A stretch of 64,000 nucleotides of DNA from Kudoa neothunni (taxonomy: Eukaryota; Animalia; Cnidaria): NCBI GenBank assembly GCA_964304625.1, contig OZ199840.1, positions 10,881,224 to 10,945,223 of the forward strand, written 5' to 3'. Below are positions 15,304 to 64,000 of this stretch, in pieces. The notes under the pieces were generated by a model. The model searched no databases. It saw only the letters and a program-made list of their open reading frames with translations, and was not told the DNA's origin. A program made the position numbers and the translations under genes. Numbering within the stretch: position 1 is the first letter of the stretch; each line of letters starts with the position of its first letter.

Positions 15304-17662
15304 CCCTCTAAATAACTTGAAAAGTCACAAATAAGACTAAAAACTGAAGTGTATTTCTACCCCACATTTTTTTAAATTTTTTCGTAGTAAATATAAATTA
15401 TGTTGTTTATACAAATTTTAAGCAATATCCATCCACAAAGTATTGTAAAAAAAGCGTAATAATATGCCAACACATTTCACGCGTGCGCATTTAATGGGTG
15501 AATTTAAGTTTTTGATGATTTAATTATATTCTAAAATAAGGAAAAGCCAGTATATAATAATAAAATTTTATTTATTATTAATCTATAATATTTTGAACAG
15601 TTTAACGTTATTAAACAAACTTAATCTCGATATAAATGAGACAAGATGTTAAATAACAGAAATAGTATTATAACCAATTCAAACCATTTTAGAATGTTTT
15701 CTGCAACATGACGCGTTGCAACTATGACATGTTGCTGAGGTTTAATGATCTTTTTTTCTTTCACACAATTAAAATCTTTGAGTCGAAATTTTTTGAGCGT
15801 TTCTAAACCGCTTTTCAACTCTCTACCCATCCTTTTTAAATAATTTCTCCTGCTTACGTTGGTTTGATGAAATATTTCTTTATAAACTGGAAACCCATTT
15901 ATCAATGAAATATCAACCATGTTGAAGAATACAATCAGGGGCCAGCGTCTAGTGAATCTTCTTACACTTACCGATACAAGTAATCGAGAAATAGCATCAA
16001 TTCCCCCCTTTGCAGAATTATAATGGACTATTACATTGCATCAGTCTTATAAGGCTCTTCTTCGGAAACTTTGGTATTAGTTGCAGAGATGCACAACATA
16101 TACACAGGTTTGTTTCTCTTGGGCAATTGTCTTAAAATCATCTTTTTAATATCAAACACAAACAGAGAAGAGTTGACAGGAGTATTTTGCAATGGTCTTA
16201 AATATGGCGGAATTTCTCTTTTATTAGATCTCAATATCCCAAGTAAGGTTAGTATTTTTCTTAACAGTTCGTCGGCCAGTTCTACAGACGTGAAAGAATT
16301 ATCACAAACTAAATTTCGACCAGAACCATGCAACAATACAACAATACGACAATGCAACAACGCAACACTGTAAAAATGTAACAATGCAACAATGTAACAA
16401 TTTAAGGGGTTAAATAACTTCAATACTATGTTTTTCCGATGTTTGTTGTCTTTTTATCTAGTTGGTTCTGCTTTCCCAAATAGACGTCGATATTATATAC
16501 ATTGGTTGATCTAGGATCAATTGCGAGATAAAACTTAATGCCATATTTTGCTCGTTTGCTAAGCATGTATTGCTTAAATGGGTAACGTCCTCTGAAAGAA
16601 ACTAACTGCTCATCAATGCATACATCCTCAAATGGACAGAAATTACGTGTAAGCAAATTCCTCCCAATGGTCCAGACGTCCCGAATATGGCAAAATTTAT
16701 CAGACTCTTTTCCCAGCTCTCGACTCTCGAGTTGCCAGATCATTATAGTCATCAAATTTAACAGCTCTTGTAATTCGCCTGAATCTATTAAGACAAAAAA
16801 GATCTCTATAAATTTGTCGACCTTCGTCAACTCCAAATAACTCCAATTAATTCCAAGTAACTCCAAGTAACTCCGAAATTGGTTCCTATCGGTCTTTACG
16901 GATAGCCATTAACAACAGACATCCAATAACACCCTCAAATTCGGTTTCATCGAAATTATTCAACTACTGCCAAAATGATAAGCATCAAATAAATTTGAAA
17001 ATTTTAGGATTATATCGTAAACTTCTTGACTCGAAAATAGTCGGAATATATCACCTAAATTAATCAATCTCAATAAAGCGAAAGGTGATACACTAGGACG
17101 ATTATTAAAAATATTTTCTGATCCATTTCTTGAAATTATTGGCTTATTAACTGATTAGAAAAATCCAATTTTGTCAAGCAAAGAATCGGTGGCCAATTCA
17201 ACGCCATCATCAGATAAATCAGATGGGATTTTATGAGATTTTATGAAGAAGTGAATTTTCAACATCGAGATAATCAAAATCGAATCAACTATCGCAGTAA
17301 TCAGAGGAAGCACTCATAGTTTAAATGAAGGCGTGCACACAAATATAATGTGTCACTAATATATTGTTATTTAATCAATGTTTTATCGACCAAATTTCCT
17401 TAAACCTCAAATATAAATATTATTTTTTATTTCTTACAATTTTATCTAAAAAAATCAGGGTCGATTTATATCCCATTTTTACCCCATTTTTATTTAGGTG
17501 TTTTTGATTTTTTAAAATGCAAATACTCTATTACATTTTTGTAAAGATCTCTATAATATAGAAGATTACATGAAATCAAAATCAAATTAACAACCATTTA
17601 CGTTTAAAAAATGTCGTCATAACATGCGTGGGGCCGAAATACACCCCATTTTATTTAGGAGG
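15304..17662 (-). mobile_element. piggyBac DNA transposon with decayed transposase
   Basis: TTAA|CCCTCTAAATAA ... TTATTTAGGAGG|TTAA. Transposase motifs IDEQLVSFRGR..KYGIKF, GRNLVCDNSFTS, GILRSNKREIP and NSAKGGIDA..RRWP are present, with frameshifts and stops. Confidence 0.93.
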
Positions 17663-22781: not shown

Positions 22782-23617
22782 TTATAAAAAACGACAACGC
22801 TTTGATGTTTTTTTTGGACAAAGGTAATAGGAGGACTTGTAGTTTTCGAGGAAATCAAGTTGTCTTAGATTGATAGCGCCACGACGTTGATGTCTAATGT
22901 ATTCGACCGCATCCAAAAAATTCATCCCAGCTTCCACCAGCGCAATAGCAACAAGAACCGGCGCTCTAATTAACATCAATTCGTCTCAGTTTATTGTTGA
23001 TTACCTGCCAAGACCTGCCACACAATGAATGGCGATTTTTGAATCAGGATACATCGAAAATTGAGCCTTAACATTCTCCAGAAACAGATCTATAATATGT
23101 TTTGGAGGTGGAAATCCATCTTCAAATTGATAATCCTGACAGAATGTTCGAATAAATTAGTTTGATTGTCACACAGTCATTTAACCACTCAAAAATTTAC
23201 CGTCACAGTTATTCCTTGTTCGATGATTGGTTCGGTTGGATAGTCGGATTCGCACACACGAATAACCTGCTTAACGTTGTGTTTCATCAGATCATGGATG
23301 TAACAGCTTAGGTTGGCTTTTGCCGGCCGATCGGTGATCAGAAAATTCAACCCATTATACTCAATAACACCATAGGTCAATGAGAAGTGATCAGGAGGAA
23401 GATCGTTTATTCCAATAACCCCTATTTTTCTGAGTTTGTTATGCAATTTCACGTCGTCCGAGTTGACCGTAGTTTTGCAGGCCAGCTCCGAATGGTTTTT
23501 GTTGGGGATTAAAAATGGTGGGCTGTTTTTGTCTGAGTGGAGAGAACAAAAAAAATTGAATGAACGCAAAATCGTATGGATGTTTTTACCGTAATGTGGG
23601 TTTGTTCCACCATTCAT
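22782..23617 (-). CDS. PTP4A: PRL/PTP4A prenylated tyrosine phosphatase, 3 coding exons (23617-23201, 23135-23005, 22965-22782)
   Basis: Motifs FLITDRP, IRVCE, DYQFEDG..PP, P-loop HCVAGLGR|APVLVAIALVE, RRGAIN..QL, a polybasic stretch and CAAX-type end CRFL*. Confidence 0.96.
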
Positions 23618-27987: not shown

Positions 27988-28530
27988 TCAATCTAACAGA
28001 TCGATCATGCCGATACTAATTAAATAATCTTCAACGTCTGATGTGGGGAAATCATCGATACCACCGAAAGCATCAAACCCCACGATTCTCTTGGCAACTA
28101 CTCCTTTTTTGAAACAGAAGATAGTGGGTATAATTCTACATGCCAGTTTCTCACACAATGGTACAAATCGTTCAACATTGAGAGAACAAATTCTAGTTTC
28201 AAGATGTTTTTCGGCGAGTAGTTTGAGGTGCATGTCCAAAATTTTACACCTGGTGGAATCACCCTTGAAAAAGTGAATAATTAATCGCTCTTCATCTCGT
28301 CCGATAATGAAAAATTCTCTCTCATCGACCAATTCTTTGTATTCGCCATGCCCTATAGAACGAAGTCGTTGAGCATCTTCCTTGCGTTTAATCATTTTCT
28401 TTAATCGTTCACTTCTCATCTTCTCGAGTTCATCCTGGTTTCCCAAGACGTTATCCAAGTAGTTGATTTCATCATCGATGATGTTCTCTACATTGGAGAG
28501 GACTTTTTTTTCAATTTCCTCCTGTTTCAT
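27988..28530 (-). CDS. TXNDC9: Thioredoxin domain-containing protein 9 / phosducin-like protein 3; intronless CDS
   Basis: Motifs ELEKMRSERL, GHGEYKEL..E.EFF, HFFK..STRCKILDMHLKLLAEKHLETR and IPTI..IVGF..FGGIDDFPT are typical of PhLP3. Confidence 0.93.
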   Translation of the reverse strand: MKQEEIEKKVLSNVENIIDDEINYLDNVLGNQDELEKMRSERLKKMIKRKEDAQRLRSIGHGEYKELVDEREFFIIGRDEERLIIHFFKGDSTRCKILDMHLKLLAEKHLETRICSLNVERFVPLCEKLACRIIPTIFCFKKGVVAKRIVGFDAFGGIDDFPTSDVEDYLISIGMIDLLD

Positions 28531-42319: not shown

Positions 42320-43321
42320 ATGATATTAATTCTATTATATATCTCATCGTACCTATTTGGCTTTACGCTGGCTAATAGAGTATTAAATGATGAATATGAA
42401 GCAATATTAAATATGAAATTGATCAGTCAATTCAAAATATGTATGAAATATGTAAGATCTAAAAAAATTTTTCAAGTAGCCAACGTCGCAACTATTGATC
42501 CCGAAATAGTTATTATAGTGAATTCTATACCAGACGATTATATTAGTAGATGCGGAATCCGCGTAAGTTGGAGTCACTTGACAGCCAAAGAATATTTTGG
42601 AATAAATTCGTATTTGGTTTTATTTCAAACTGGCCATAGCCAAAGCTACAAAATGGATAGGCTGATAAAAGAAAATCACACATTCGGGGACATGCTCATC
42701 CACACGAACGTGCATGATTCCTACAGAAATTTATCCAGAAAGAATATTGAGTCATTAAAATTCATTACCCGTTATTTTCCTAACGTCAAGTTGATTGTTA
42801 AAACCGATTCTGATGTTTTTATTAATATGGAAGCATATATGCACCACCTGGCCAATGTGAAAAACTCAAATATCAAATATGAAGGTTTAATGTAGTATTA
42901 ATGTTTATTTTGTATTCATCTAGTAAATAACTAATGTTTTAGAATGAAAAATCAAAGTGTAGTGAGAGCGAAACAGTTTAGAAATTACGAATCATTTGAA
43001 AACTACGCCGAAAGTCATTATCCATCTTATTGCACCGGAGGTGGGTATTTCATAAGAGTCAATACTTTGCGCTGCTTGATCGAAAATACATTGAGTTACC
43101 CATTTCTAAATAATGAAGATACAAATATGGCTATTAGCTTGTTGAAGTGCGGAGTTCAACCTTCCACTAATGAATCGTATTGCCGCCATGCAATGTTCAA
43201 TCCTAGCTATGTTTATGCGTTCAAACGAATAAAGGACTTCAAGAATTGTTTTTTTATTCACGGAATCAGCGGTTATTCGCAAATATTACTGAAAGAATTA
43301 TTTTTAAAGTGGTCCATTTAA
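42320..43321 (+). CDS. GT31 family beta-1,3-galactosyl/GlcNAc transferase, 2 exons (intron ~42892-42942)
   Basis: N-terminal hydrophobic anchor, then R..IR.SW, E...FGDML, DSYRNLS.K, KTDSDVF (DxD), YPSYCTGGGY and ED motifs. The splice EGLI|MKN keeps the frame. Confidence 0.9.
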
Positions 43322-47264: not shown

Positions 47265-49516
47265 CCCTTTCGTGCCAAATGTCCACCCTAGTACCCAAAA
47301 AATTAAACGTCCCATAAATATGCACGTTAAATTTATTTAGATGATTTATTGAATTATTACACTTTTTAAAAGTTAAATGTTTGTTTTTAGTGATAGCCAA
47401 TTAAGTAAACTAAGAGACCTAGCATTTATAGTAAGTTAAATAGAAATCCTTACATAAAATAAACAGGGAGTACAAGAAATTCAAATTTATGCACATGCAG
47501 TCAGTTTTTTCTCGTCGAAAAAAATTTGAATTTGGAAACGTTAAAACGTGATTCAATGTGCTACATTTCATTAGACACATGACAACCTATCAAAATATAA
47601 TGACTAATCAACACATGGATCACGATTTGGTTTTTAGATGTTCAAAAGAGGGAAAAACGACAACTGAAATTGTGGTATTTCCTGATGCGGATATTTCTGA
47701 TCCAGAAGAATACGTTGAAGATTTTGGAACACAAAATCTCGAAGAAAGGGTGCTTTAGGCGTACACCGAAAATAATCAAGATTCAGACTGTTCTGATGAG
47801 GAAGTTGTACCAACCTTTAATTGGAATATAGGTGAAACCTTTGCAAATACGCCAAATAAGTCGGAGACGGAAGATATTGTTTTTAGTGAAGTTACCGATC
47901 TCGTTTTACCGATAAATTATTTCAACTTCTTTTTCAATGAAGACCTGATTCTGTTAATTATTGAAAAGACAAATTTATATTCGGTTCAGCAAAATTCTAG
48001 TTTTCGAGTTGGTAAAGATGATATAAAAAAGTTTATAGGAACGTTGATTATCATGGGAATTGTCAAAATGCCGAGATATCGTTGCTATTGGTCTAAAACT
48101 CTAAATTACCCACCTGTTTCTGAGTTTATGTCGAGAACCCACTTCTAAAATATTTCAAAATATTTACATTTCACTGATAATTCAAAATTTATCACAAATC
48201 CAAATTCTTCAGAATATGATAAATTTGCAATGATTCGACCGGTTTTGGATTCTATTAGAACAAATTGTTTGAAAGTTGAATGTGGACGAAAGAACTCAGT
48301 TGATGAGCAAATTATTCCATTCAAAGGTAGGTGTAAAGCGAAACAATATGCTCCAAAGAAACCGATGAAATGGGGACTCAAAATGTTCACGAGATGTGGA
48401 GTTAATGGGCGGCTAGTGCATGATTTTTATCTGTATGATGGGAAAAACCCCAAGGTGGTTAAAAGTTGTGGTCTAGTATCCGGTGACTTTGTTATAAAGT
48501 TGTGCGAGAGTTTACCCTTGTGCAAAACTTACTTTGTCTACTTCGACAATTGGTTTACATCCATTCCTCTTCAAATTTTATTAAAAAAAGGAGAATTTGA
48601 GAGTTTGCACGACTCTAATGATAATATTTCCATAACGCGTTGGTTTGACGGATCTGTTGCAACTTTCTCATCAACCCATTCTTCAATCCAACCGATTAAA
48701 ATGGCGAAAAGATTTGACCGTTCCAAAAAAATCATGATTGACATTCGGTGCCCTGCAGTTGTAGCTGAATATAACCAAAATATGGGAGGAGTGGATCTTT
48801 CAGATATGTTGAGTTGATGTCGCTCTATGTAATGAAACATAAATGTAAGAAATATTACATGCGAATTTTCTTCTGGGCCCTCAATACATGTATTATAAAT
48901 GCGTGGTTATTATATAAGCGAAATTGTACGATTCGAAAATTTCCAAAGAGAGATATACTGAACTTGGTGAATTTTTCATTGAAAATAAGTGAAAGTCTTC
49001 GTTAATACCAAATAGCAAGTGCTCCCAAAAAACGTGGTAGACCGACTCTTAATAATTCTTTCGAAACAATTGATGATAAATATGAAAGAACTGAGAGAAT
49101 AAGAACACATCCTCTCAGTAATCATATTCGACCGGATAACGTAGGGCTTTATCCTGAAATAGTGTCAATTAAATCCAGGTGTAGAATATGCCAACGAAAA
49201 ACTCAATTTAAATGCACTAAATGTTATTCTTTTTGTTGTATTGTTAAAGATAGAAACTGTTTTTTAAATTATCATAGTTCAAATATCTAAAAAATGTTCA
49301 AATTTATTTTGTTTGTTTTGTGCGCAATTCAATGCGCGAAATCGTAGTTTTACCACCTAAGCCAACTGTCCACCTCAGTACCCACGTTAAAAACGGCTGA
49401 AATTATACTTCTAATTAATTTATATCTCAATAAAATCATTAAATATAGGATTTTTAGTGCCTATAATATATTTTAAAATATCGTGAAATGAAATAAAAAA
49501 TATGGGTACGAAAGGG
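47265..49516 (+). mobile_element. piggyBac transposon with both termini and an inactivated transposase
   Basis: TTAA|CCCTTTCGTGCC ... GGTACGAAAGGG|TTAA. Motifs SVDEQIIPFKGR..KKPMKWGLK, YFDNWFTS, EYNQNMGGVDLSD and a C-terminal Cys-rich domain RCRICQRKTQFKCTKC..CFLNYH. It has premature stops, a frameshift and an internal deletion. Confidence 0.95.
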
Positions 49517-50224: not shown

Positions 50225-52616
50225 ATGATGAAGCGTAGCTTTAATTTGGGAATATACTTGTATTTTTATGGTAAAGCTATTCGTATTTTTAAATTTTTTG
50301 TTCACTTATCCTTTAGTACTGTTGAGTGGTAACTACTGTATAGAAAGCACGGAATCTCCGAGAGTGTTATATTATGAAGCTATAACTCTTAACAACAGAA
50401 AAGGACTCAAAGTTTTATTGAAGGGGACCAAATATTCTGATGAAAAAGGATGCTCTGTAATGATAGACAAACGCAATCTACAAGGCTACATGGAAATCAG
50501 ATCCTGCACGGAAAATGTTGAATATAAGATCGAAACATGTTACGTAGAATGCGGCAAATTGCCAATTAGTTTAAGTTCAACAGAAAGAAAATTGAGAAAT
50601 AATTATATTTTAATCAGAGATAGATCTCAATTTGAGGACCTAGAGGACGACGCTATTTTCACAATGGCAAAAGTTTATGGGACATTAATACGTAATATTT
50701 GATAGTTGATTGGAATTTATTCTCTTTAGCCCCATTAACAAACCCTCTGTTTGAAGTGGCGGTGTCAGGATCTGATATATTGTTTAAGCAAAATATGTGC
50801 CCACATGTGACCTGTGGCACATATTATAATCAGATTCGCTTTGATGCCCATGTTGACATTGGAAATTGTGTCAGTCCTTCAATACATCATATACGCAGTT
50901 ATCATTGGGTGCCTGAATTCGAATTTAGATGCCCCGACTTCCCATCCCTTTATTATTATTTAAGAAACATATATATTCAGCGAAACATTGATATTTACAA
51001 ACCGCAATTTTATGTTAGTAAAAATGAAGATAATGGACCGCATAAATATCACCTGAATTTCACAAATAGTTTTCCTGGCGAAATTTGCAAATTTTATATC
51101 AAAAAATTTGTTAAAGGGGAATTTTTTAAGTATTTTTCCAGTTGCAAAACAGGAATCCTTGGTTGTTATGCTCCATGTGATAATGTTCAACTTATTTATT
51201 CATCTCCCTCGACTATTGTGGAAGTTTTGATCCAGCAAAGACACCATGACAGGATTTCCAATAATTTTGGTTACATTTATAGAAAGATAGGTAAATTTTT
51301 TCTTGTTAAAACCGCTAATACTAATATGGCAATGTAGTTGTAATGAAGGGATCGGATAAAAAAGAAAAGCTAATAAAATCGAGCACAAGTTCTACAGTTA
51401 GCCTAAATGTACTCTTATTCAAATACTTTGATTCATATTCATTGGTCGATTCATGCACTGTGTCCTATTATTATGCGGATGAATTGAGGAGTGCTTCGAG
51501 AATAGCCACCTGTGAAGATGATTCGTTATGCGACACATCTTGTGATTCTGAGCTTGACATTAAAAATTTACAAGTAGGACGTTCAGTTACTCTTGAAGTG
51601 GATATACGAATAAATAGCACAATTAAATTTCAAGAATATTTATACATTAAAATGAGTAATCTTGAATATTGATTCTGTTATAATCATAGAAATATTTATA
51701 TAGAGGCAAACGAAGAAAATAAATTTGCCAAAGACTTAATATACGTGGGAGATAAAATCCTATCAATAATTGCAGTAAATGGCTCTATTTCTGACAAAGA
51801 TGACATTACATGCGAATATCACGTTAGAGAATTCCTAACCAATAGTTATTATCCAGCAGAATGCGAACAAATTTTGCCTTGCAGGGGCTTTTGCAAAGAA
51901 AACAAAACTATAACTAACCTGCGTTGGAATAAAAACTACGATATAAAGGTTATATCGCAAGCAAAGTATGGTATTAAAATATACAAAAATGTTAGAAACG
52001 GTAAAATTAATGTCGCTGCTAATAGAATAATCTATTTTGTAGAACCTACTATTGATTATAAAAGTATAATTTCTGCGTTGGGATTAAATTACAGTCGTAT
52101 TGATAAAAATATTATGGTCACCACAAACTTCATATCCAATATTAAAGATCCTAAATGTGTTTGGAAATTGTATCGTTCGTACGGTGACATAACTTTAATG
52201 GTAAAAAAGTGTATGGAGATTAACGATGTTGATTGCAGACATGTTCCATCCTGTAATGCGTTCGTCATTGAAAATACAGATAATGACATAGAATACAACC
52301 TGAGTGTATTCTTCTATCTAGACCAATATCTAAACCAAGATATTACAATAAAGAAAGGTAAAAATGTTTATTGTATCTACTATAGTGACTAATTTATCGT
52401 ATATCGTATAGGCAAGGGAAAATTTTCTACGTAAATTTGTTCTTTACTACCAAACAAAAATAATTTTAATTTAGGTTAACATTAATTATGTACTCGGCTT
52501 CATTATTTTCAATTTGTTATAATGCTCTAAATTTATTTAGAATAATTGGAACCTTGGGAGGAATATTTCTCATTATATTAATTCTAGGGATTAGTATTAA
52601 ATATGCAAAAAGATGA
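50225..52616 (+). CDS. Uncharacterised type I membrane protein with repeated 4-Cys modules (paralog 1)
   Basis: Signal-peptide exon MMKRSFNLGIYLYFY|VLLSG, then ORF-track exons 50268-52392 joined by short introns, two micro-exons and a TM exon IIGTLGGIFLIILILGISIKYAKR*. Exon structure is shared with paralog 2. Confidence 0.82.
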
Positions 52617-53077
52617 TGATGTATCAGAAAAATAACTTTGTTAATTTTAATTGTTTTATCCTCATAATCTCATAATATTATTAATTATGGTAATGTTTTG
52701 ATAATGCGTCATTCTGTTAGAAAATAGGGAATTCACGCAATATTTACACTATTTCGCGCGCATTCTTATTTTTGTTTCTTAATAATATTTGGAAGTAGAT
52801 TCCTTCTCTCGTTGTCTATATTATATTAATAAATAAATATAATATTGAATATAAATAATTGAGAAATTCATTTCTTTATAAAATTTTCGTGAAGACGCAT
52901 TTATTAGTGATTTAGTGGTATTTTTATGTTCTTAAATTGAAGCCGGTTTTCTTTAATTAGTCACAACGATTAATTTAATTTATTTTGATAAATTTTATAA
53001 TATTTTTATTTTCACTCCTACTATTCCGATAAAATAAAGTTCCATATTTAATCTTCTAAATCACATGAAAATTTACA

Positions 53078-54155
53078 CCCTCCAGGTATAATTGGGGTCT
53101 AAAGACTCTCCGTTTTTGTTTGGTAAAATATTTTATCGTTATATATTCAGTAATTCCATAAATGACATAATGTAATATTGTGTGCGCACAATAAAGAAAT
53201 ATTTTTACCACAGCGTATGTGTATGTATTACTTTTGAGATCACATATTTTCTATATACATAACTTAAAATTCAGCTCATTTAGAAAAATTAATTCTTTAT
53301 TTAATTTGAGCTTAAAGTGATAAAAAATATCATAATTCTGACATAGACATAGATACGCTTGAAATGTTCATTAGGGCGGAAACTACGCGTTTTTTTCACA
53401 TCTAAATATGCCGTAGTTCACCAACATGGCAAAAGTTTCCGGATTATTTTTGTTACCTCAATATTTTCCGTATCATCAAAATGTGAAACTCACATTATTT
53501 GGAGAAATTTATGTAATGAAATAAATCATGATATATCTTTCCTTTTTCTAGCCCAAATAACTCTTTAACCAATTCTCGATTATCCCTATGATATCCCGTC
53601 AGAAATAAACTGCTAATGAACCCATCCAATTCGATCCATCTATCACCAAAAATATTTCCACCCATGTACTGGTATATTTTTAAATAATGGCGTACATAAC
53701 AGAATTAAAAATTATTCTAAAAGTATCAATTGTATTTTGTAATAAAAACGGAGAGACACCAGAACAACTATTCATAATATCTGCAACACATGTTCTAGAT
53801 GCCAAAGGCCGATTCATTGACCGTGATATACTTTTCTTGTGTATTAATGAGTTAAATTGTATATATGTATCAACATCATATTTTTCTAACGATAAATAAT
53901 CATGGATCGCTGAAAATAAATCTGAAGATTCGGTATCAGAGTCATTACTATTAAGATCACTTGAACACATCATTGAAATAAATTATGGTGCATGTGCAAT
54001 GTAGATTAAGATATGTTATTCAAGCAATAAAAATATATTTACTTAATAGAATTTTTTCAAAGTTTCCTCAAACATTTAAATAAATATTTTGGATAATTAG
54101 ATGAAAAAAAATCGAGGGGTCAAAAATACCTCAATTTTAAATTATACTTAGAGGG
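53078..54155 (-). mobile_element. Internally deleted piggyBac element
   Basis: CCCTCCAGGTATAATT ... AATTATACTTAGAGGG|TTAA. An acidic/Ser-rich transposase N-terminus (53680-53973) is followed by frameshifted remnants. Confidence 0.7.
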
Positions 54156-54553
54156 TTAATTATCTAATGCAATGATAAGTAAAAATATCAAAAAAAATAT
54201 ATTCGTTTCGAGAGTTTAACAAAATTTTAAAGTAGGGTTGTTTTTAAAATATTTTCGACAAAGATAAATAATCTAATGACTACATAATTAAAAAAACATT
54301 ATTCAATTTGTCTTTGATTTAAATTATATATGATATAAATTATTTTATTTTTATTTAATATGTAAAAAAATTTTGCAGGCTATCTCATTTTCTTAAATAA
54401 ATTATAAAAATCTTAATAGAATCAATAATACTTGCACAAAATATATAATTAATCGAAAAACGTACTTAAAAAAATTCAGAGATTAATAAACAAAGCTAAG
54501 AATTATGTATTTTAAGAAGATATAAAATTCTTTATTAAATTAAACCTCTAGTG

Positions 54554-56029
54554 CAGCGTTCCCCTACAAATTTTACACCCTCATCCTAATTTCCACGTTC
54601 ACTTCGCATCCCCTTCTCCATGTGAATGTCAAGACTCAATTATACTTTTTATTTAAATGCGAAAATATAAATGTATTAAAATAACAATTTTTATTATTTT
54701 AGTTTATATTTTAACTTCAAATTTTCCCATTTACTTCTAAAATAAAATAAATTAAAACGAAAATGTTTTTGTTAACTCAATTTGGTATGTATAATTGAGT
54801 AAACATGAACATTATCTTTTCACTCCTCCTGATTTAACATTCAACGATTGGAGTTATTATTCATTCCTGCCTATATATGCCATTTTTATGTAAAGTAATA
54901 AATAACTAGAATAAATTATATTATTATAATTATTCCAAAATATTAGACGTAAAAAATAAATATAAATCTAAATTATAAAAAGTATGGTCGCTTAAATAAG
55001 TTCTGTACTTAAAGATGTAAATTAAATGGGTCAAATAAAAATGGCCAATTTGTATAATTCAGAAGAAACATTATTTCAAAATTAATTGTTATTTAGTATT
55101 TACTTGAACTGGCGGTTCTCTTTCTCTCGCCGGGTTTTCATAAGTAATTCAAAGCAGGACATTTTGTTGGACTATGAAAGATGAAAATCGTTTCACGCGT
55201 TTAATGAATTCCAATACTTATTATTTGTTTATAATGAAGTCGATAAGCTTGTTTCATATGCTATCTTTTATTGACTTAATCTAGCGACTACTTTATTCTA
55301 TATTGAGTCATACGTTAGCTTATATTTTGAGGCAGTGGGTTAATAAAAATTCGATAGATTCAAGAAATTTGACTTCTAAATATACTTGACTAAAATAATT
55401 AATATATATGTCTATAAATGAATGATTTGGACCTTATTTTACCTATACTTTAAAGAACAATTTAACTTAGATTTATTTCAGAGGCAAGGTACAAATTCGA
55501 AAGTAAAATTTGAAACAAAACATAATAAAAACTATAAAATTAAATGATGAATCTCAAATTTGGACATAAGACAAAGTTAAGATTACGTGGTTGTTTTATT
55601 TTTATGGATATGGATTATTTGTAAGTAGAAAAAAATGATGACAACCTAATTACAGCTTGAGAATATATGTTATTTTGAAAGATAACAAAGTTAAGATTTT
55701 ACATAAAAATGGCGAAAGTTAAATTTTTTTAGCTGAACAGGCTTAATATAAACTATTACCTTACTGCACTATTTCGTAGAATAAATTATAAATTAAATAA
55801 CTTATCATAGCCCATTTTTTGAATCGAAACTAAATGACATCAAGACAACCAGATATAGTATTGTACGCATTACGTTCTTACATGATTTAAACGGGGACTA
55901 ACGAAAATTACGAAGTAAATAAATTAAGATTAATTTTTAAATTTATTCTTGAATGATTCCCGCACCACCAATGATGGCTCTTCGCATCCCTAGGGGGTGC
56001 GGGAACCCCCTCCTTGTAAGGAAACATTG
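54554..56029. mobile_element. Possible hAT (Charlie-like) non-autonomous element
   Basis: Ends CAGCGTTCCCC / GGAAACATTG with subterminal cgcatccc/cgcacc motifs like the 13854 MITE. The TSD matches only partly. Confidence 0.4.
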
Positions 56030-56034
56030 ATCTA

Positions 56035-56900
56035 CAATCAATTGGGAAGATAGGTTGTAACTTTCTTTACACGCCCTCATAAATTCATCAAATATATATC
56101 TGATGGTGACAAGTTTATCCTCTCTATCACTGGTTCTTCTCTTGTCGAATCTGAGACAAGTTGCGAAATCTTCAAAGCGATTTCCTGTTATCTTTGTAAT
56201 TAGCTATTGAAGGCCAAATTTTTTAGTCAAAAATTATCGGATATTTTCCTTTTTGCCTCTAATTACGCCAATTAATAATATAGCTACGGAAAAAATCCTT
56301 ACCTTATCCATATTTATCTTGTTGACATTGAGTTTTTCTTGTTCAATAAATTTGTTGGTACAATATTGGATCTCTTCCAACAATTTATTGGTCAAAAAAT
56401 TATTAAAGCCCTCATGGGAGTTTGACAATTCTGGACAGTTTTTTTGTAATTTTCGATTATGCATTATAAATATTTTCCATTGTAGGGATCCATTCAAAAC
56501 TAATTGGGGTTTTACGCCGTATTCTCCATCTTTGGAGACAATAAACGGGACATGGGTCATATCTTCAATTCTCGCATCATCATCATCGTCATCGTAATTG
56601 TTGGCTGGCTCATTAATTATTTCACCCAAATCCTCCGAACAACTTACATAATCGTTTTAAAAAAAATATGTTCCTCGTCAGAATTCATTTTTTAAGCGAA
56701 TTTTTTGTTGAACGCGCAAGCTTGTCATAAAATAAATTCAATTAAAATTTTTGATTAAACATATAATTAGTAATAAGTTATTTCAGAATATTTTAAATTG
56801 CGTATGAAATATAATATTAAAATTAGAATGATGTAATTACAATACAAAATATTAATTCTGTTAACAATTACATGTGAACCGAAATGGTCCATCTCAGGTA
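56035..56900 (-). mobile_element. piggyBac transposase 5' fragment
   Basis: Acidic N-terminus, FIVSKDG, FLTNKLLEEIQYCTN, ILLIGV and a frameshifted DKLVTIRYIFDEF segment. Confidence 0.7.
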
Positions 56901-57854
56901 TTTAGGTAATTTTTTTCACAAAAATTCTCAAAATTTACAGATCTATTATTTTAAAATGTAATAAAACATACTTACAGAATAAAATAGGAATGCATAAAAA
57001 AGTTTAAAACAATGTACGCAAAAAGATATTCAAAGGTTGTTATTCCCACTTGTTGTCTTTTTGTTAAATTTAGTGATCTTAATTTTTTTATGAATTTAGT
57101 TTATAGCTTGTTTTAAATTGGTTTAATTTAAAAATGACAGGAAATTACTATTAGTTTTATAAGGATAAACTAATAATAAATAAAAAGAATGTAGCAATAA
57201 AAATATTAAAATTTTTGTCGATAAAAAATATGTTAAAATTAATATAAATAATAGTAGCTAAACATAAACTGCTAACTTTGTATGAGCACCTACACAACAC
57301 CCTAATTATATTTAATTTGTTTCGTCCAACAATTGGTAGGTTTTAATTAAAATATTATTAATTATTTATAATAACTAACAAAGTACAACAATATATATTT
57401 TTATAAATCCTAATATCCATTAAATCTACAATATTTTGTATGTTAATATTCATAAATAATTATCTTAAATATTTCAGAAATTGTTATTTTGTAATTTTAT
57501 TACGACATTAATAATGTATATTGTATTAAAAATAATTCGATTTTTATTATATTGATAAGAAGAATATGGATCGTTGGAAATAACATAATTTTGCCAACTA
57601 ATTAAATACAAATATTATTAAAATAAATTAATTTACATGAGGTATCTTTTGAATAATTAATTAATACATTTTATAGAAAAGAATATCTAATTAGCAACTA
57701 TTATTAATATGTGTACATCGTTATGTGTAATTTAGAGTGTGATCCTAATCTTAATAAATGCTAAATAATTAATGTATAACCAAAATATATCAAAGCGATA
57801 GTTATTAGCCAAAATCGTCTTCAATAAACTCAATTTATCTATAGACAGAAATAA

Positions 57855-60233
57855 ATGAGAAACTTTCTCAATAGTCTTGGATGGATTTTCCTCTTGAAAA
57901 GTATGAATGTTGATGAATTATTATTACATTGATAGTTTAGCAATATGGGAAGCTCCGGCTATAGAAAATAATAAACCTCCAAGAGTACTTTTTTATGGAA
58001 TCTCAGCGTATCATACTCAGGAAGAGTTTGTGATTTATATGCGTGGAAGCGAATATTTGAAACCCAAAATATGTCATATAATGATAGAAAATAATATGAG
58101 GGATGATTATATAGATGTAGACGCTTGTACAGGATATATCAGAAATGGAGGCAGGAAATGTTTTGCTCGTTGTAATAAAACCAAAATCAGAATCCCTTTT
58201 GGTGAATTTGGTTCCAGGATAAGGTATGTATTTGTAAAAGATGCAGATTCGAAAAGGGATTTACACAATGAAAGCCCTATAATTGGAAAAACTGTTTTTG
58301 GTTTCCAAACACGTAATAATTTTGCTATAAGCAAATTTTTGAACTTTTATAGCCATGCTATTAAATCCTGAATTTAAATTATCTGTATCCGAATCCAAAA
58401 TAATACTAGGATTCAAATCATGTCCTCCTGTTCCATGTCGCACTACATATCATCAAATCGAATTCGATGAGAAAATTGAATTTGGAAGTTGCTTCACTTA
58501 TTCATTCCATCATCTAGCCAGTTATCACTGGATACCCAAGTATGAATTGAAATGTCTTAATAAACCATCCTTCTATTATGATATGAGAAACAAATATATT
58601 CGAAATAATATTGATATTTACAAACCGCAATTTTACGTTAGCAAAAGACTGAATCAACAAAATAAATATTATTTGAATTTTACTAATAGTTTTCCTGATG
58701 AAATTTGCAAATTCGGTATAAGAAAATTGATAAACGGCGACAATTCAACTTTGAAATATTCTTCTCTTTGCAATAAAAGGAGAGATGGGTGTTACGCCCC
58801 GTGTAATAATGTTGAACTATTTTATGATTCTCGCTCAATACTAGTGGAAATACTGATCCAATCACGATACCACAATTTATCATCAAATAAAAATGAATAT
58901 AATGACGTTGGATTTATATATAGGAAGATTGGTAATTAATAATTTATAACTTATAAATATTGCGTATTAGTTATAACAGAAGGGTCTCATGAGAATGAAA
59001 AATTAATATTATCTTATTCAAGTTCAAGTGTTCGCCTGAATATACCCTTATTTATTTATGATTCGAAATATCTGTTTGAAAAATGTGTGACCCATTACTA
59101 CTATGCAGGTGAATTTAAGGCTGATAGAATCAATATGATCATCCCAAGTTGTGATCTTGAAGCAATATGCGATACATCCTGCAAATCGCCGCTTGACATA
59201 AATGATCTACCAGAAGGTAGTCCACTTATGTTCGAAGTTAAAATATTCTTTAAGAGCTCGTTTATCATGAATGAATATATTTTTGTTAGAACATGTAACG
59301 AATTTGTATTATTCACTTTGTAATATATTTTTAGCTTCGAAAGAGGTTAACTATTTTTCTAACAATCAAATTTACGTTGGAGATACATCGGTATCAATAA
59401 TCGCGCGTCGAGGCATAATTTATAACAAAGATGATATCACTTGCGAATATTATCTCAGAGTTGTTGAATCTAACACATTCTATCCAGCACAGTGTGGCGG
59501 AATTACTATTTGTCGTGGTTTTTGCAAGGAAAACAAAACCATAACAAATATCTCGCAAGGAACTAATTATGATATAAAAGTTGTTTCACAAGCTTTTTAC
59601 GACACTAAAATATACCAAAATATAAGAAAAGGTTAAAATAATATTACTATAATAGAGATATAGTTATTATAGAATTTAAGATTGATTATGATATCGATAA
59701 AAATACTAAAATGAAGTTAAACTTTACATTCACGAATAATACCATTATAGTGAATACCGACTTTGTCAGCAAAACACACAAACCAAAATGTCTTTGGGAA
59801 TTATATTGCCTCTCTGGTCCAGTCACTGAAATAGTAAAAAAATGCACACAACCCAAAGACACCGACTGTATACATATTCCGTACTGCCAGAGTTTTATTA
59901 TCGATAAAGCGGAAAAAGGAAAGCTATATCTATTATTAGTATACTTACAGGAAGATAAATTCATACGGGGCAGAATTTTAATTGATGCCCATGAAAATAT
60001 TAAATTTCTCAATGAAAACACTGATTTGAATATCACAGAAACAGAAATAATTTCTATGTAATCATTTGTTTCTTTAGAAAAATAATAATTTTTAGGACAT
60101 ATTTGGCTATGTAATTTTCATATGATTTAAGTTGATATTTTTAGTTAATTTTAGAATCTCTGTCATTTTAGGCATAGTTGGTTTAGTTATCGTGTCCTTT
60201 GGATTCTATTATGGATATTGGAATGAAGAATAG
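57855..60233 (+). CDS. Uncharacterised type I membrane protein with repeated 4-Cys modules (paralog 2)
   Basis: MRNFLNSLGWIFLLK|TIWEAPA.., colinear with paralog 1 (SYHW.P..E..C, NIDIYKPQFYVSK, LNFTNSFP.EICKF, CDTSC, DDITCEY, CRGFCKENKTITN, PKC.W.LY), then a 15-nt micro-exon and TM exon ISVILGIVGLVIVSFGFYYGYWNEE*. Confidence 0.82.
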
Positions 60234-60289
60234 TTATAATTGTTAAATATTCATTCTAAACATTTTGAATTAGAATAAATTTTATCCTT

Positions 60290-61289
60290 TATTATTCGTG
60301 GGACCAACTGGGGTCATTTGTGACCCCAATATCAATAGTTTTCCTTTTTTACGCATATAACATTAAATGAGAAAGCTCAAAGCTATTTGATTCCTCATTT
60401 AAAGTTTGTAGTTAATAATCATAAGGTTATAAAGAAAATAATATGTTTACTGATATAAATATTTTACCTTTAATAAGCGATGTACCCTCTACTTCATTTA
60501 AATGTAGCTATTACGAATTAATATCAAAATAACAAATATTATAAAAAAAGCTAATGACATTAATTTTCATTAAAAAGCATTAGAACATTATTATAAGCGT
60601 AATAAATACATTTTTTGGTTTCGCGTCGATCAACTCCGTTTGATTATGTTGAGTATCCAAAGATTATCCTTTAGAAGAGATTTCAACAGGCAATGTAATG
60701 AAGGACAACACACATCGAACTTTTACTTTAAATCAAAAAGAAGTCAAAAAAATCCGTTATTAGCTTTAAAATATATTCAAATTTTATTAAAAATATATTT
60801 TATGGTTTCCACATCTGAATAAGTATAAGTTAGTTGGGAAGGGCACCCCCTGTTTAATAATCAAATATCAAATCATAATCTACAGTTGCATTCAAATATT
60901 ATTCAGTAGCCCTGGAGATTGTAATCATCAAACATTTGTGGTCCCGTGCTCAAAGTTCACATTAAAACTCAATTAGATGTTCTACTATTATCGTTCTCCT
61001 CTTGAAAATACTCGAAGATAATTGTATCTATCTATCTATCTATCTAAGACATTACATCCATTAATATACAAATGATATGGATAATGGTGTATGGAGCGAT
61101 GTAAGAATTTAATGATAACTTAGCAGTGGTAGAAATACCAACACCTAATTTTTATTAAATACATACAATAATTATAACAACTAGATGGACTGAAAGGATA
61201 TAACTGTTTAAAAAATTGAAAAAGTCCTGGGGTCAAAAATGACCCCAGTTGATTCCTCGTGAAGTTTTTTTCAGTAGGTCCTTCGGGGG
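60290..61289. mobile_element. Non-autonomous piggyBac-like element
   Basis: Subterminal palindromes CTGGGGTCATTTGTGACCCCA (~60308) and CTGGGGTCAAAAATGACCCCAG (~61227). The right end is CGGGGG|TTAA; the left end is unclear. Confidence 0.55.
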
Positions 61290-62989
61290 TTAATTATTTT
61301 CAAGGCAATAATTTTTGATTGTTGATTTCGATAGGTTTCAAAAGTGAATTCTATAACTTGGAAAAATTGAAATTTATTAGGTTTTGTTTTTATCAGCTTA
61401 ATTATTTCAAAATATTTTTGTTTTATTCAATAATGTGTAGTTTTGATTGCTATAAATCTTAAAATCCTGCTGAATTCATAAATTTATCTTGGTTAAGAAT
61501 AAATAAAAAATTAAAATCATTTTTTTCAGATTCTGACTAATAATTTTAAAATATTGTGACATGAACCTTGAGATTATTGAATTTTTAATTTAACTTACTA
61601 GTTGATATTCACAATTATAATTACTAACCTTTTAACTAATAAAATTTAAATATATTGTTTAACAAAATAAATCAAATTATATTATACTATCAAAATGATT
61701 TTATAAAATTTATGGACATACACAAAAAATTTAATTTTTAAGTTTTTTTAATATTTTAAGTAATATTTAATTTAGATTTTGGTTTAAAAATCACGAAAAT
61801 ATCCGAAATGGCATTTGTTTCTAAATTATCTTCAACGCTGTAGTAATCCCCCTATGAACAGAGGCTGAGCCCGCGCTAACTCGCTACATTATTGGGCGGA
61901 AATCCTCAAGACCACTACGACTATCGGTTTTATCGCTATAGCTTCTACTGATATTATAACTATAATAAATAAAGATCTACATACATTATTATAAACATTG
62001 ATAGTTTCTTCGCGCAAATGCCACTAACGTAAGCACTTTTTTCATTCGAAGTAATTACGATATATTTCGCCTTTATCGAAAAAATACAATATTAAACTCT
62101 TTGATCGATATTTTGATTATGGTCCTATTTTATTTTTCTATTTTAAAAATCCAATCTAATGTCGAGGTAATTAATAGACTCGGTATTACTAACTAGTATA
62201 TGGCCTAACAATGAAACAGTGGTCAGGATAAAGCGATAGACAAAAAAAGTCTTGACAACGAATCAAAATAATTTATCATATTTTTTCATACAAATATGGG
62301 ATTAATTGAAGTTTTATTTCTCATTTTTTTCTAATTTGAATAATTGGTTTATTCGTAGGCAAATTCTCTACTAAAATGTAATTAAATCATATACAGATTA
62401 TCAAAATTTATTATAATTAAAAAATTTTGCTTATTTGATGCATTAAATTTTAAACTTAAATTATATAAATTCATAAATAAACTAAATGAAATGTTTGATT
62501 TGTTAAAAGTTAGTATAAAACTGATGTTCTACTGTTTATTAGTAATCAATTACGATGATAATGATTAAGAAGCCTCATCAATTTGTTACCCCTAAAATAA
62601 CTAATAATTATATTAAAACTATATATATATATATAAGTTTATTGAACAAAAATTACCTTTTTTATCTGACTCGGAGGGATTATTAATATTATTTAAAATA
62701 GTGGATCATTTCGTCTAAAATTTCAGATTTACTAATGTTGTTTGAATCAAGTTTTAGTTAAATTAAGATATAATCAAGAAACAATTTTAAATATTAAATT
62801 GAAGATTAATTCAAGAATTTTAAAATTATGGAGTGAATTTAATTGTCTCGGTGGAATTATATTATTAAAAAATTTTTTGTAAATATGACAGGATAATATC
62901 ACTTAATGGCACCATTTATTTGGGCGGATATCAACGAAAATTGAATTCCTTCATTGTCACACACTTAATCCTATTTCATGCATTTAAAA

Positions 62990-63447
62990 ATGAAAAAATA
63001 CTCCTATTTTCTTTCCTTAATTTTTACATTCAACTGTAAGTATACTACAAACAATTTATAAATCTTATATCAATTTAGTAATAACGAAAGGAAACGTTTC
63101 AGAAAATGAACCTTCAAGAGAACTCAAATACGAATTTTTATATGGTAGAATTTTAACAAGACTAAATTTTTGGTTGGTTGGAAAAAATTACTCAGAAGAC
63201 AAAATGTGTCATTTAATGATTGAAAATGACATTAAGGATGGATATATGGAAATCAATGATTTTTCGGAAGACAATGAAGGAATTTCTGCGGAAAATATTA
63301 TGTACTGTGAAGAGGTAGAGATTGGTCTGCGTATCAGCGAACAAACAATAAGTAAAAAATATCTATTCGTAGAAGATGGAACGACAACAAGTGATATAAT
63401 GGCCCAAAACTCCGCTGTGAAAAAAACTATTTTTGGAATGCAAATAC
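62990..63447 (+). CDS. Paralog 3 of the 4-Cys-module membrane protein family (first two exons; remainder presumably beyond the window or disrupted)
   Basis: MKKYSYFLSLIFTFN|LITKG..LVGKNYSEDKMCHLMIENDIKDGYMEI..KTIFGMQI, with a donor at 63448 in the same position as in paralogs 1 and 2. Confidence 0.75.
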
Positions 63448-63461
63448 GTAATATATAACTA

Positions 63462-64000
63462 CAGTGCAACTTCGGTCTTCGACCATAATCCGTTCTAGAC
63501 GTGTGTTCGAACTCTGAATCAATTTTTCCCAAGTAAAATAATGAAAGTTAATTTAATTCGTGCTACTCATCAAATAAATGACTATTTTTATTCTTATTCA
63601 TTAAAAAACAAGCATGCCTTGTGTTGATAAATATATAAAAAATAAACATTGAATTTAATAATGAAAATGAGATATACGATGTAACGCAAGCTCCGAATTG
63701 GGATTCGAATCTGCGTTATTGGCGTTAAAAAGCGGTGGGGCCATACCGCTCTCGATCGCGCTTATGATTGGTGGATTACAACTCTTGTAATCCACATGTT
63801 ACATGGGATAAAAATTTGTTGATCGTCATAAACTAAATTTTTAAGGTTTTATTTCGATGACGTTTGCATTATTTGATTGAGCTAATCTCCTTATAGAATT
63901 CCTTTTTATTTCGGTTTTTTGCTCCCACTTGAGTTGTTCTGAATACCCCTTCCTATGTATTCGAACTCAAGTGTTTTTGACTCAAAATTTTTGGTCAAAC
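63462..64000. mobile_element. pogo/Tigger-like MITE with tRNA-like segment (copy 2), in intron 2 of paralog 3; truncated by the window edge
   Basis: TA|CAGTGCAACTTCGGTCTTCGACCATAATCCGTTCTAGA.., colinear with 28884-29386. Confidence 0.82.

Follow-up and report, generated by a model that had tools for sequence, protein, structure and literature searches.

A genome-wide family of cysteine-stapled FN3-like membrane proteins is a candidate for the variable host-facing coat of Kudoa neothunni

Introduction

Which molecules might a jellyfish-related parasite of tuna muscle display to its host? The question is raised by three co-oriented genes, here termed P1, P2 and P3, in a 64,000-nt stretch of Kudoa neothunni DNA (the window; contig C3:10881224-10945223, forward strand, of an assembly of 40.26 Mb in 4 contigs). 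An initial annotation of this window had read the trio as a tandem array of lineage-specific type I surface proteins of unrecognised fold, assembled from a repeated four-cysteine module. Myxozoans change their surface antigens during infection, with the molecules involved being almost unknown (PMC8481699). The published K. neothunni assembly comprises 40.2 Mb in three chromosomes, with an N50 of 12.0 Mb, a median intron of 49 nt and 46% repeats (PMC12239612). Here, we describe P1-P3 as members of a family of about 245 genes or more, predicted to encode rods of FN3-like and Ig-like domains. This number is comparable to 4-5% of the 5,316 proteins predicted from a genome well known for the genes it has lost. 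The family is a strong candidate for the variable host-facing coat of the parasite.

P1, P2 and P3 follow a common exon plan

P1 and P2 are intact type I membrane genes, encoding 673 amino acids (aa) in 9 exons and 698 aa in 8 exons, respectively, and splice models of all three genes bear out their claimed co-orientation and common exon structure. A signal exon is followed by exons for module A, for B and C jointly, and for D, E and F, by one or more micro-exons, and by an exon encoding the transmembrane (TM) helix and tail. All introns of P1 and P2 are of the GT..AG type and 38-54 nt long, and every ectodomain intron is in phase 1. The exons are as follows:

50225..50270, + strand: P1 exon 1, encoding most of the signal peptide and, like exon 1 of most paralogs, 46 nt long
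50317..50691, + strand: P1 exon 2, module A, the membrane-distal and most divergent four-cysteine FN3-like module (AlphaFold2 model, predicted local distance difference test (pLDDT) 67.7; VIA)
50730..51290, + strand: P1 exon 3, module B (CP..C..C..HW.P..C; similar to the immunoglobulin (Ig) C1 set), then module C (four-cysteine FN3-like, CYAPC; AlphaFold2 model, pLDDT 65.7)
51338..51655, + strand: P1 exon 4, module D (four-cysteine FN3-like, with variable Cys2-Cys3-Cys4 loops)
51704..52000, + strand: P1 exon 5, module E (four-cysteine FN3-like, CRGFC; weak Pfam fn3 matches in paralogs)
52043..52357, + strand: P1 exon 6, module F (membrane-proximal, four-cysteine), directly after E since module X (see below) is absent
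52412..52616, + strand: P1 micro-exons 52412-52430 and 52475-52489 and last exon 52541-52616, encoding stalk, TM helix, very short tail and stop
57855..60233, + strand: P2, intact paralog of 698 aa (gene model), with exons 57855-57900, 57941-58312 (A), 58353-58931 (B+C), 58971-59294 (D), 59335-59631 (E), 59673-60057 (F and stalk), 60096-60110 and 60155-60233 (TM helix, tail)
62990..63447, + strand: first two exons of P3, 62990-63035 and 63079-63447, the second encoding a module A without Cys2 and Cys3
63448..64000, + strand: P3 intron 2 (605 nt in all), the rest of the gene lying past the window in locus L002

As the initial annotation had it, P1 and P2 combine a signal peptide (assigned by hydropathy) with a large ectodomain, a single TM helix and almost no cytoplasmic tail. 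In P1-P3 the helix reaches a KD19 peak of about 2.7-3.0 and carries no charged residue, the tail measures 4-7 aa and differs in sequence from gene to gene, and a 15-nt micro-exon directly precedes the TM exon. The ectodomains bear 6 (P1) and 10 (P2) N-glycosylation sequons, and P1 contains 25 cysteines in 673 aa (3.7%) without CXXC arrays. A 46-nt exon 1 with a signal-peptide-like product (by hydropathy only) recurs at most of 41 paralog loci, a sample biased to the best matches in which most loci stop short of the TM exon. The junction between modules A and B finds outside support in a distant relative (P0002, L058) in which a single open frame spans A and B and contains the same joining motif. 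The P1 sequence is sound, because a 2021 run of the same sample shows the P1 locus, unspliced, with zero differences; this run may be the source sample itself and is not independent support.

While P1 and P2 proved complete as described, P3 is not truncated: it starts at 62990, intron 2 crosses the window end, exon 3 begins about 50 nt beyond it, and the remaining exons through TM helix and stop are located downstream, with a frameshift on the way. The length of P3 intron 2 (605 nt vs about 40 nt in paralogs) suggests an insertion.

The four-cysteine modules are predicted to be FN3-like

The spacing pattern originally proposed for the module indeed matches five times in P1. With slightly relaxed spacing, five matches occur in P1 and four in P2, where shuffled sequences are expected to yield 0.06 (maximum of 2 in 5000 shuffles), and the cysteine columns are 90-100% conserved across 38-40 paralogs. 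Cys2 and Cys3 have been lost jointly in module A of P3, in module A of L026 and its close relative L030, and in module D of L051. These about three independent events suggest that the disulfides pair Cys1 with Cys4 and Cys2 with Cys3.

Database searches and structure predictions were carried out exon by exon, whereas joined gene models were used in alignments and in BLAST runs with the sampled loci and the window as targets. AlphaFold2 models cover exon 2 (module A) and exon 3 (modules B and C) of P1, and the structure prediction and Foldseek comparison proposed initially places all three modules among beta-sandwiches of the FN3 or Ig-C1-like kind. In the VIA comparison, the first match of module A was an IFNAR1 subdomain (Z 7.9, root-mean-square deviation 2.3 over 83 aa), followed mostly by FN3 domains (Z 6.2-6.9), which also make up most of the top 50 rows. 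The exon 3 model comprises two beta-sandwiches, of which module B matches the C1 domains of major histocompatibility complex proteins, beta-2-microglobulin and Fc (Z 7.0-8.0, 4-10% identity) but has no family-wide Trp, where C1-set domains have a C-strand Trp and a B-F disulfide, and module C matches FN3 domains of LAR, L1CAM and fibronectin (Z 6.0-6.1); the best Foldseek row for this exon is the NCAM Ig5-FN1 tandem (E 1.6e-3). The models of A and C, of middling quality, show the seven-strand topology of FN3/C2 domains. Across the top fold matches, which take in IFNAR1, IL-2Rgamma, IL-7R, IL-17RA, PRLR and tissue factor, Z-scores indicate fold class, not function.

For modules E and D, the FN3 signal resides in the sequence. 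Module E gives a weak Pfam fn3 match in 20 of 39 paralogs (best E 0.0045; E 9.7e-5 and 23 bits in relative L058), aligns to titin FN3 and shows the FN3 E-F/strand-F signature L-x-P-x-T-x-Y, with L72 conserved in at least 90% of the 39 and Y78 in all of them. Module D carries the equivalent L-x-x-G-K-x-Y; in A and C the tyrosine-corner signature is not evident, and a conserved strand-B Trp, as in FN3 domains, is missing from the (near-)invariant columns in each of A, C, D and E. The gathering cut-off of Pfam fn3 (PF00041) lies at 25 bits, above the 23-bit peak of the relatives; the P1 and P2 exons gave no fn3 match and nothing else significant in Pfam, nor did profiles of modules A and B+C find anything significant in a sequence search of the PDB. 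Atlas feature neighbours, to be taken as leads only, are FN3 clusters with scores below 0.9. The modules are hardly alignable to one another by hhalign, with only the D-E pair reaching 49% (E 1.8e-4), so that it is not sequence but size, fold, exon phase and the spacing of cysteines that support the notion of one repeated unit; a match between F and X was an artefact of read-through in the X set. Overall, the models and sequence signatures identify the module as a cysteine-stapled FN3 variant and not a new fold, with A, C, D and E being FN3-like and B Ig-C1-like.

Module E (51706-51999, CRGFC..YD..V..K.YG) was also considered as an NMDA-receptor ligand-binding domain, on account of Pfam Lig_chan-Glu_bd matches (best E 7.6e-4) in 28 of the 39 related members and a GluN2 match with E about 0.3. 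This was rejected as probable chance, because the match spans 35 aa only, the members are non-independent and the same stretch matches FN3.

The family occupies all three chromosomes

The trio is co-oriented as claimed, but neither the array nor the family ends with it. Locally, module A also occurs at C3:10950004, 10958709 and 10972960, i.e., at least three further copies lie downstream of the window. Genome-wide, P1 exon 3 gave 150 scored matches among 430 candidates, all with E of at most 1.2e-26 and 149 of them free of stops. The paralog count called for at the outset was based on the motif C[YFH]APC, found at 260 sites vs 15 for the reversed control, and therefore amounts to about 245. 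Members lie in clusters, in both orientations, and some copies are broken. A TAAACC array is found in the assembly solely at the end of contig C2, at 12.04 Mb; the (TAAACC)n telomere was reported at one chromosome end (PMC12239612). Two tandem copies on the same contig (L022/L023; C2:9841732 and 9846113) are identical at all five sampled segments over about 3.5 kb, reflecting either a very recent duplication or an assembly duplication.

As to lineage specificity, an exhaustive search with hidden Markov models (HMMs) of 1.84 billion representatives returned only 19 proteins, all unnamed Logan/ENA singletons, and no named homologue; word-based searches found one relative in one case and none in another. 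Together with the absence of Pfam matches above cut-off and the copy number of about 245, this supports a lineage-specific family of type I surface proteins. Nine traced database relatives come from four samples (ERZ795007, SRR33849685, SRR31175926 and ERZ28624939). ERZ795007 is at most 77% identical to the K. neothunni assembly, and the SNF5 adjoining a member in SRR31175926 is only 41-44% identical to K. neothunni SNF5, so that these samples represent other species, probably other myxozoans. Relatives in these samples keep the A-BC-D-E-X-F order and short tails, tails below 10 aa being seen in the trio and two distant relatives. Architectures nevertheless vary more widely there than among the sampled K. 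neothunni loci: L062, L064 and L065 have extra FN3-like modules or tandem genes, with a module A-like unit placed after others and two TM exons in L064. The family goes unmentioned in the K. neothunni genome paper (PMC12239612) and in a Sphaerospora molnari preprint (10.64898/2026.02.11.705288), and our literature searches found no myxozoan FN3 surface family; it thus appears undescribed so far.

The trio is a divergent clade lacking module X

In the tree, P1-P3 form one clade (support 100/99) on a long stem, and identity of the next-best exon 3 match in the genome falls from 55% to 41%. Other members carry an extra FN3-like module, X, between E and F, with a 45-75 aa insert rich in Ser, Thr and Pro between Cys2 and Cys3. 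Among 78 genes measured, the trio alone is without module X, the spacing from exon 3 to module F being 1310-1317 nt in P1-P3 vs at least 1718 nt in all 75 others. One loss of a symmetric phase-1 X exon in the ancestor of the trio would be the simplest reading. Of the genomic relatives scored, none exceeds 33% identity to module A of P2. Because the three genes have diverged rather than been homogenised, a specialised role is likelier for them than interchangeability as variants. As a natural domain-deletion variant with unique distal domains, the trio may help to part conserved from variable function.

Within the insert of module X (L016:2841-3340 and 35 other loci), an [IVL]-A-R-like motif is conserved at nearly all of the 36 loci; it is a candidate protease site in a mucin-like loop whose halves would still be held by a disulfide. 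Relative L058 has module X without the insert.

Constrained frameworks carry near-neutral loops in modules A and D

The membrane-distal module had been singled out as the most divergent, and it is, with 23-25% identity within the trio vs 40-61% in modules B-E. The near-identity ascribed to internal blocks was overstated: a 26-nt run shared by P1 and P2 is real, but synonymous sites of the trio are near saturation (proportion of synonymous differences, pS, 0.58-0.80). The run sits in a family-wide conserved motif and gives P of about 0.05 on a null preserving the synonymous match rate, before correction for three pairs (P 0.007 on a weaker codon-usage null). Gene conversion between P1 and P2 was rejected as not significant on the stricter null, and no convincing conversion was found in the trio, unlike in other family clusters. 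In the C2:9.8 Mb cluster, L041 is a mosaic that alternates between L017 and L025 at 96-100% identity (nearest-neighbour switching).

The per-module selection and conversion tests suggested initially thus gave conversion in that cluster, though not in the trio, and purifying selection on frameworks. The ratio of nonsynonymous to synonymous rates (dN/dS) was 0.13-0.44 in the trio, rough at such divergence, and about 0.2-0.6 in frameworks of young clusters. In the latter, the Cys2-Cys3 loops of modules A and D and three Cys3-Cys4 residues of D reached 0.9-1.2 on local dS, and up to 1.4-1.8 when dS of the genome sample was used, compared with 0-0.5 for the Cys2-Cys3 loops of modules C and E. The near-neutral A and D loops mark the variable surfaces but do not prove positive selection, and conversion confounds the estimates.

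Comparison with known surface-protein systems

FN3 domains (PF00041), as found in fibronectin, LAR, L1CAM and the class II cytokine receptors IFNAR1 and tissue factor, share with the Kudoa modules a seven-strand sandwich of about 100 aa and the encoding of one domain per phase 1-1 exon; they are the best structural match for A and C and have L-x-P-x-T-x-Y in common with E. The Kudoa modules differ in their four conserved cysteines, the lack of a visible strand-B Trp, sub-cut-off Pfam scores and just 1-14% identity to solved domains.

A cnidarian parallel in organisation is offered by the Alr genes of Hydractinia, which are clustered and highly divergent and encode single-pass proteins with Ig-like and FN3-like domains, one per exon, and unusual disulfides (PMC9546547). 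In Alr proteins, 1-3 distal Ig domains of the V/I set are combined with a single FN3-like domain, the tails often contain ITAM/ITIM, and the genes, a few dozen, form one complex (PMC9546547), whereas the Kudoa proteins are set apart in their domain description by a distal FN3-like module, 5-6 FN3-like modules in all, 4-7 aa tails and about 245 genes on all chromosomes. No homology to Alr was detected in general profile and PDB searches, no direct Alr profile comparison having been made.

SRS and 6-Cys proteins are parasite multigene families of cysteine-stapled beta-sandwich surface proteins, to which the initial annotation had likened the trio. This likeness holds as an analogy: those families are mostly anchored by glycosylphosphatidylinositol and have six cysteines and a fold of their own, in contrast to the TM helix, four cysteines per module and FN3/Ig-C1 sandwiches of Kudoa, and no SRS or s48/45 match appeared in Pfam or among the listed structural matches. 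A Plasmodium CSS match (31 residues, E 0.08) was discarded as non-significant. Giardia-type variant-specific surface proteins (VSPs), of which 18 are reported in S. molnari (10.64898/2026.02.11.705288), likewise form a multigene family with signal peptide, large cysteine-containing ectodomain, one TM helix and short tail, but are defined by more than 10% cysteine, more than five CXXC/CXC motifs and a C-terminal motif that is conserved, unlike P1 with its 3.7% cysteine and beta-sandwiches. Class I/II cytokine receptors have WSXWS or the class II pattern and a Box1/JAK-binding tail; no WSXWS motif was seen in P1 or P2, and none of P1-P3 has a tail of JAK-binding length. Finally, variant surface antigen systems display their proteins by mutually exclusive or switching expression and combine a large repertoire with segmental gene conversion; the latter combination is present in the family, though conversion is not seen within the trio. 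By analogy, the family would work like parasite variant surface families, yet it falls outside SRS/6-Cys, VSPs, Alr and cytokine receptors.

A putative membrane-anchored coat or adhesin repertoire

On balance, we favour the family being a membrane-anchored, non-signalling, host-facing repertoire of coat proteins or adhesins. In each protein, beta-sandwich domains would be lined up as a rod, A (FN3)-B (Ig-C1-like)-C-D-E-(X)-F, followed by a TM helix and a tail of insufficient length for signalling. Exposed on the membrane of the parasite, the protein would contact host cells or matrix, of fish or annelid, through its variable loops, and a large recombining repertoire could supply antigenic or adhesive diversity. 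Duplication, exon loss and gene conversion may have diversified the family, with the trio as an old sub-clade of short, specialised members. The dN/dS of 0.13-0.48 in most modules speaks for this reading, as does the stage-specific antigen change reported for Kudoa thyrsites and other myxozoans (PMC8481699). If correct, the family would be a concrete candidate for the Kudoa host interface, and hence for diagnostics or fish vaccines.

Several points weigh against a host-facing coat. Sporogonic stages of Kudoa are intracellular in muscle, where there is less need for antibody evasion. The family is not confined to subtelomeres. No region has a dN/dS clearly above 1 on local dS, so that relaxed constraint and diversifying selection account equally well for the loops. 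The assembly has a frame change at a G run in exon 4 of P3, which could reflect a genuine lesion or an error from low coverage. Model quality is middling (pLDDT 66-68, Z at most 8.0), and the reading is drawn from DNA sequence and predicted structures. Three metatranscriptomes returned no reads, which counts neither for nor against expression. We infer function here from sequence, by which adhesin, receptor and variant antigen are not separable.

A bolder proposal, to which we give a rather low probability, is true antigenic variation in an animal parasite, with FN3 as the scaffold: of the about 245 genes, just one or a few would be expressed at once, the A and D loops would resemble complementarity-determining regions, X would allow shedding by way of a mucin loop open to cleavage, and the trio, being without X, would be invariant, non-shed receptors. 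Among the rivals of the coat reading, we give a low probability to a code for self or kin recognition or for adhesion between parasite cells, in the manner of Hydractinia Alr, whereby isoform-specific homophilic binding via the distal module would sort cells during cell-within-cell development, spore assembly or mixed infections. The clustered single-pass Ig and FN3-like Alr proteins provide a cnidarian precedent (PMC9546547), and the distal module is the most divergent in Kudoa, too; however, it is FN3-like where Alr has V/I-set Ig domains, the tails are shorter than 10 aa where those of Alr often hold ITAM/ITIM, neither the HMM nor the PDB profile search revealed a link, and about 245 loci are many for an organism with few cell types.

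That the proteins sit on the parasite surface as decoys or scavengers for cytokines or other immune proteins of the host seems improbable to us. Tandems of cysteine-stapled FN3 domains are typical of cytokine receptors, and several such receptors rank among the top fold matches, but their identity is 5-14% and ordinary FN3 proteins score about as well (Z within about 1), WSXWS is missing from P1 and P2, and a decoy would hardly need 245 variants. Just as doubtful is a receptor repertoire that would sense host cues and rely on a separate co-receptor for signalling: the unique, divergent distal domains of the trio are under purifying selection, as such a role would have it, but the tails lack motifs, the TM segments offer no charged residue for adaptor pairing, and gene conversion in other clusters suits variation better than fixed sensing. 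Least probable, in our view, is a largely non-adaptive expansion of a redundant membrane protein through transposon-aided duplication under weak selection. While the 46% repeat content (PMC12239612), the piggyBac remnants around the trio and some broken copies would fit, 149 of 150 exon 3 matches lack stops, dN/dS is far less than 1, and distant species have preserved the architecture, in a lineage that lost most other genes.

Other features of the window

Around the trio, three further genes or gene fragments were assigned:

23189-23617, - strand: exon of a PRL-like phosphatase, recognised by eye, with no Pfam match
27988-28530, - strand: thioredoxin-domain protein (PF00085; Pfam)
42320-43321, + strand: galactosyltransferase (PF01762; Pfam)

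Remnants of piggyBac-type transposases (PF13843) lie at 16426-16866 and 48230-49005, and 56234-56629 (- strand), which has no Pfam match, may be a further transposase remnant. Between P2 and P3, at 60297-61259, lies an element of about 960 nt whose inverted ends, 32 nt each, are 88% complementary, probably a miniature inverted-repeat transposable element of the piggyBac type.

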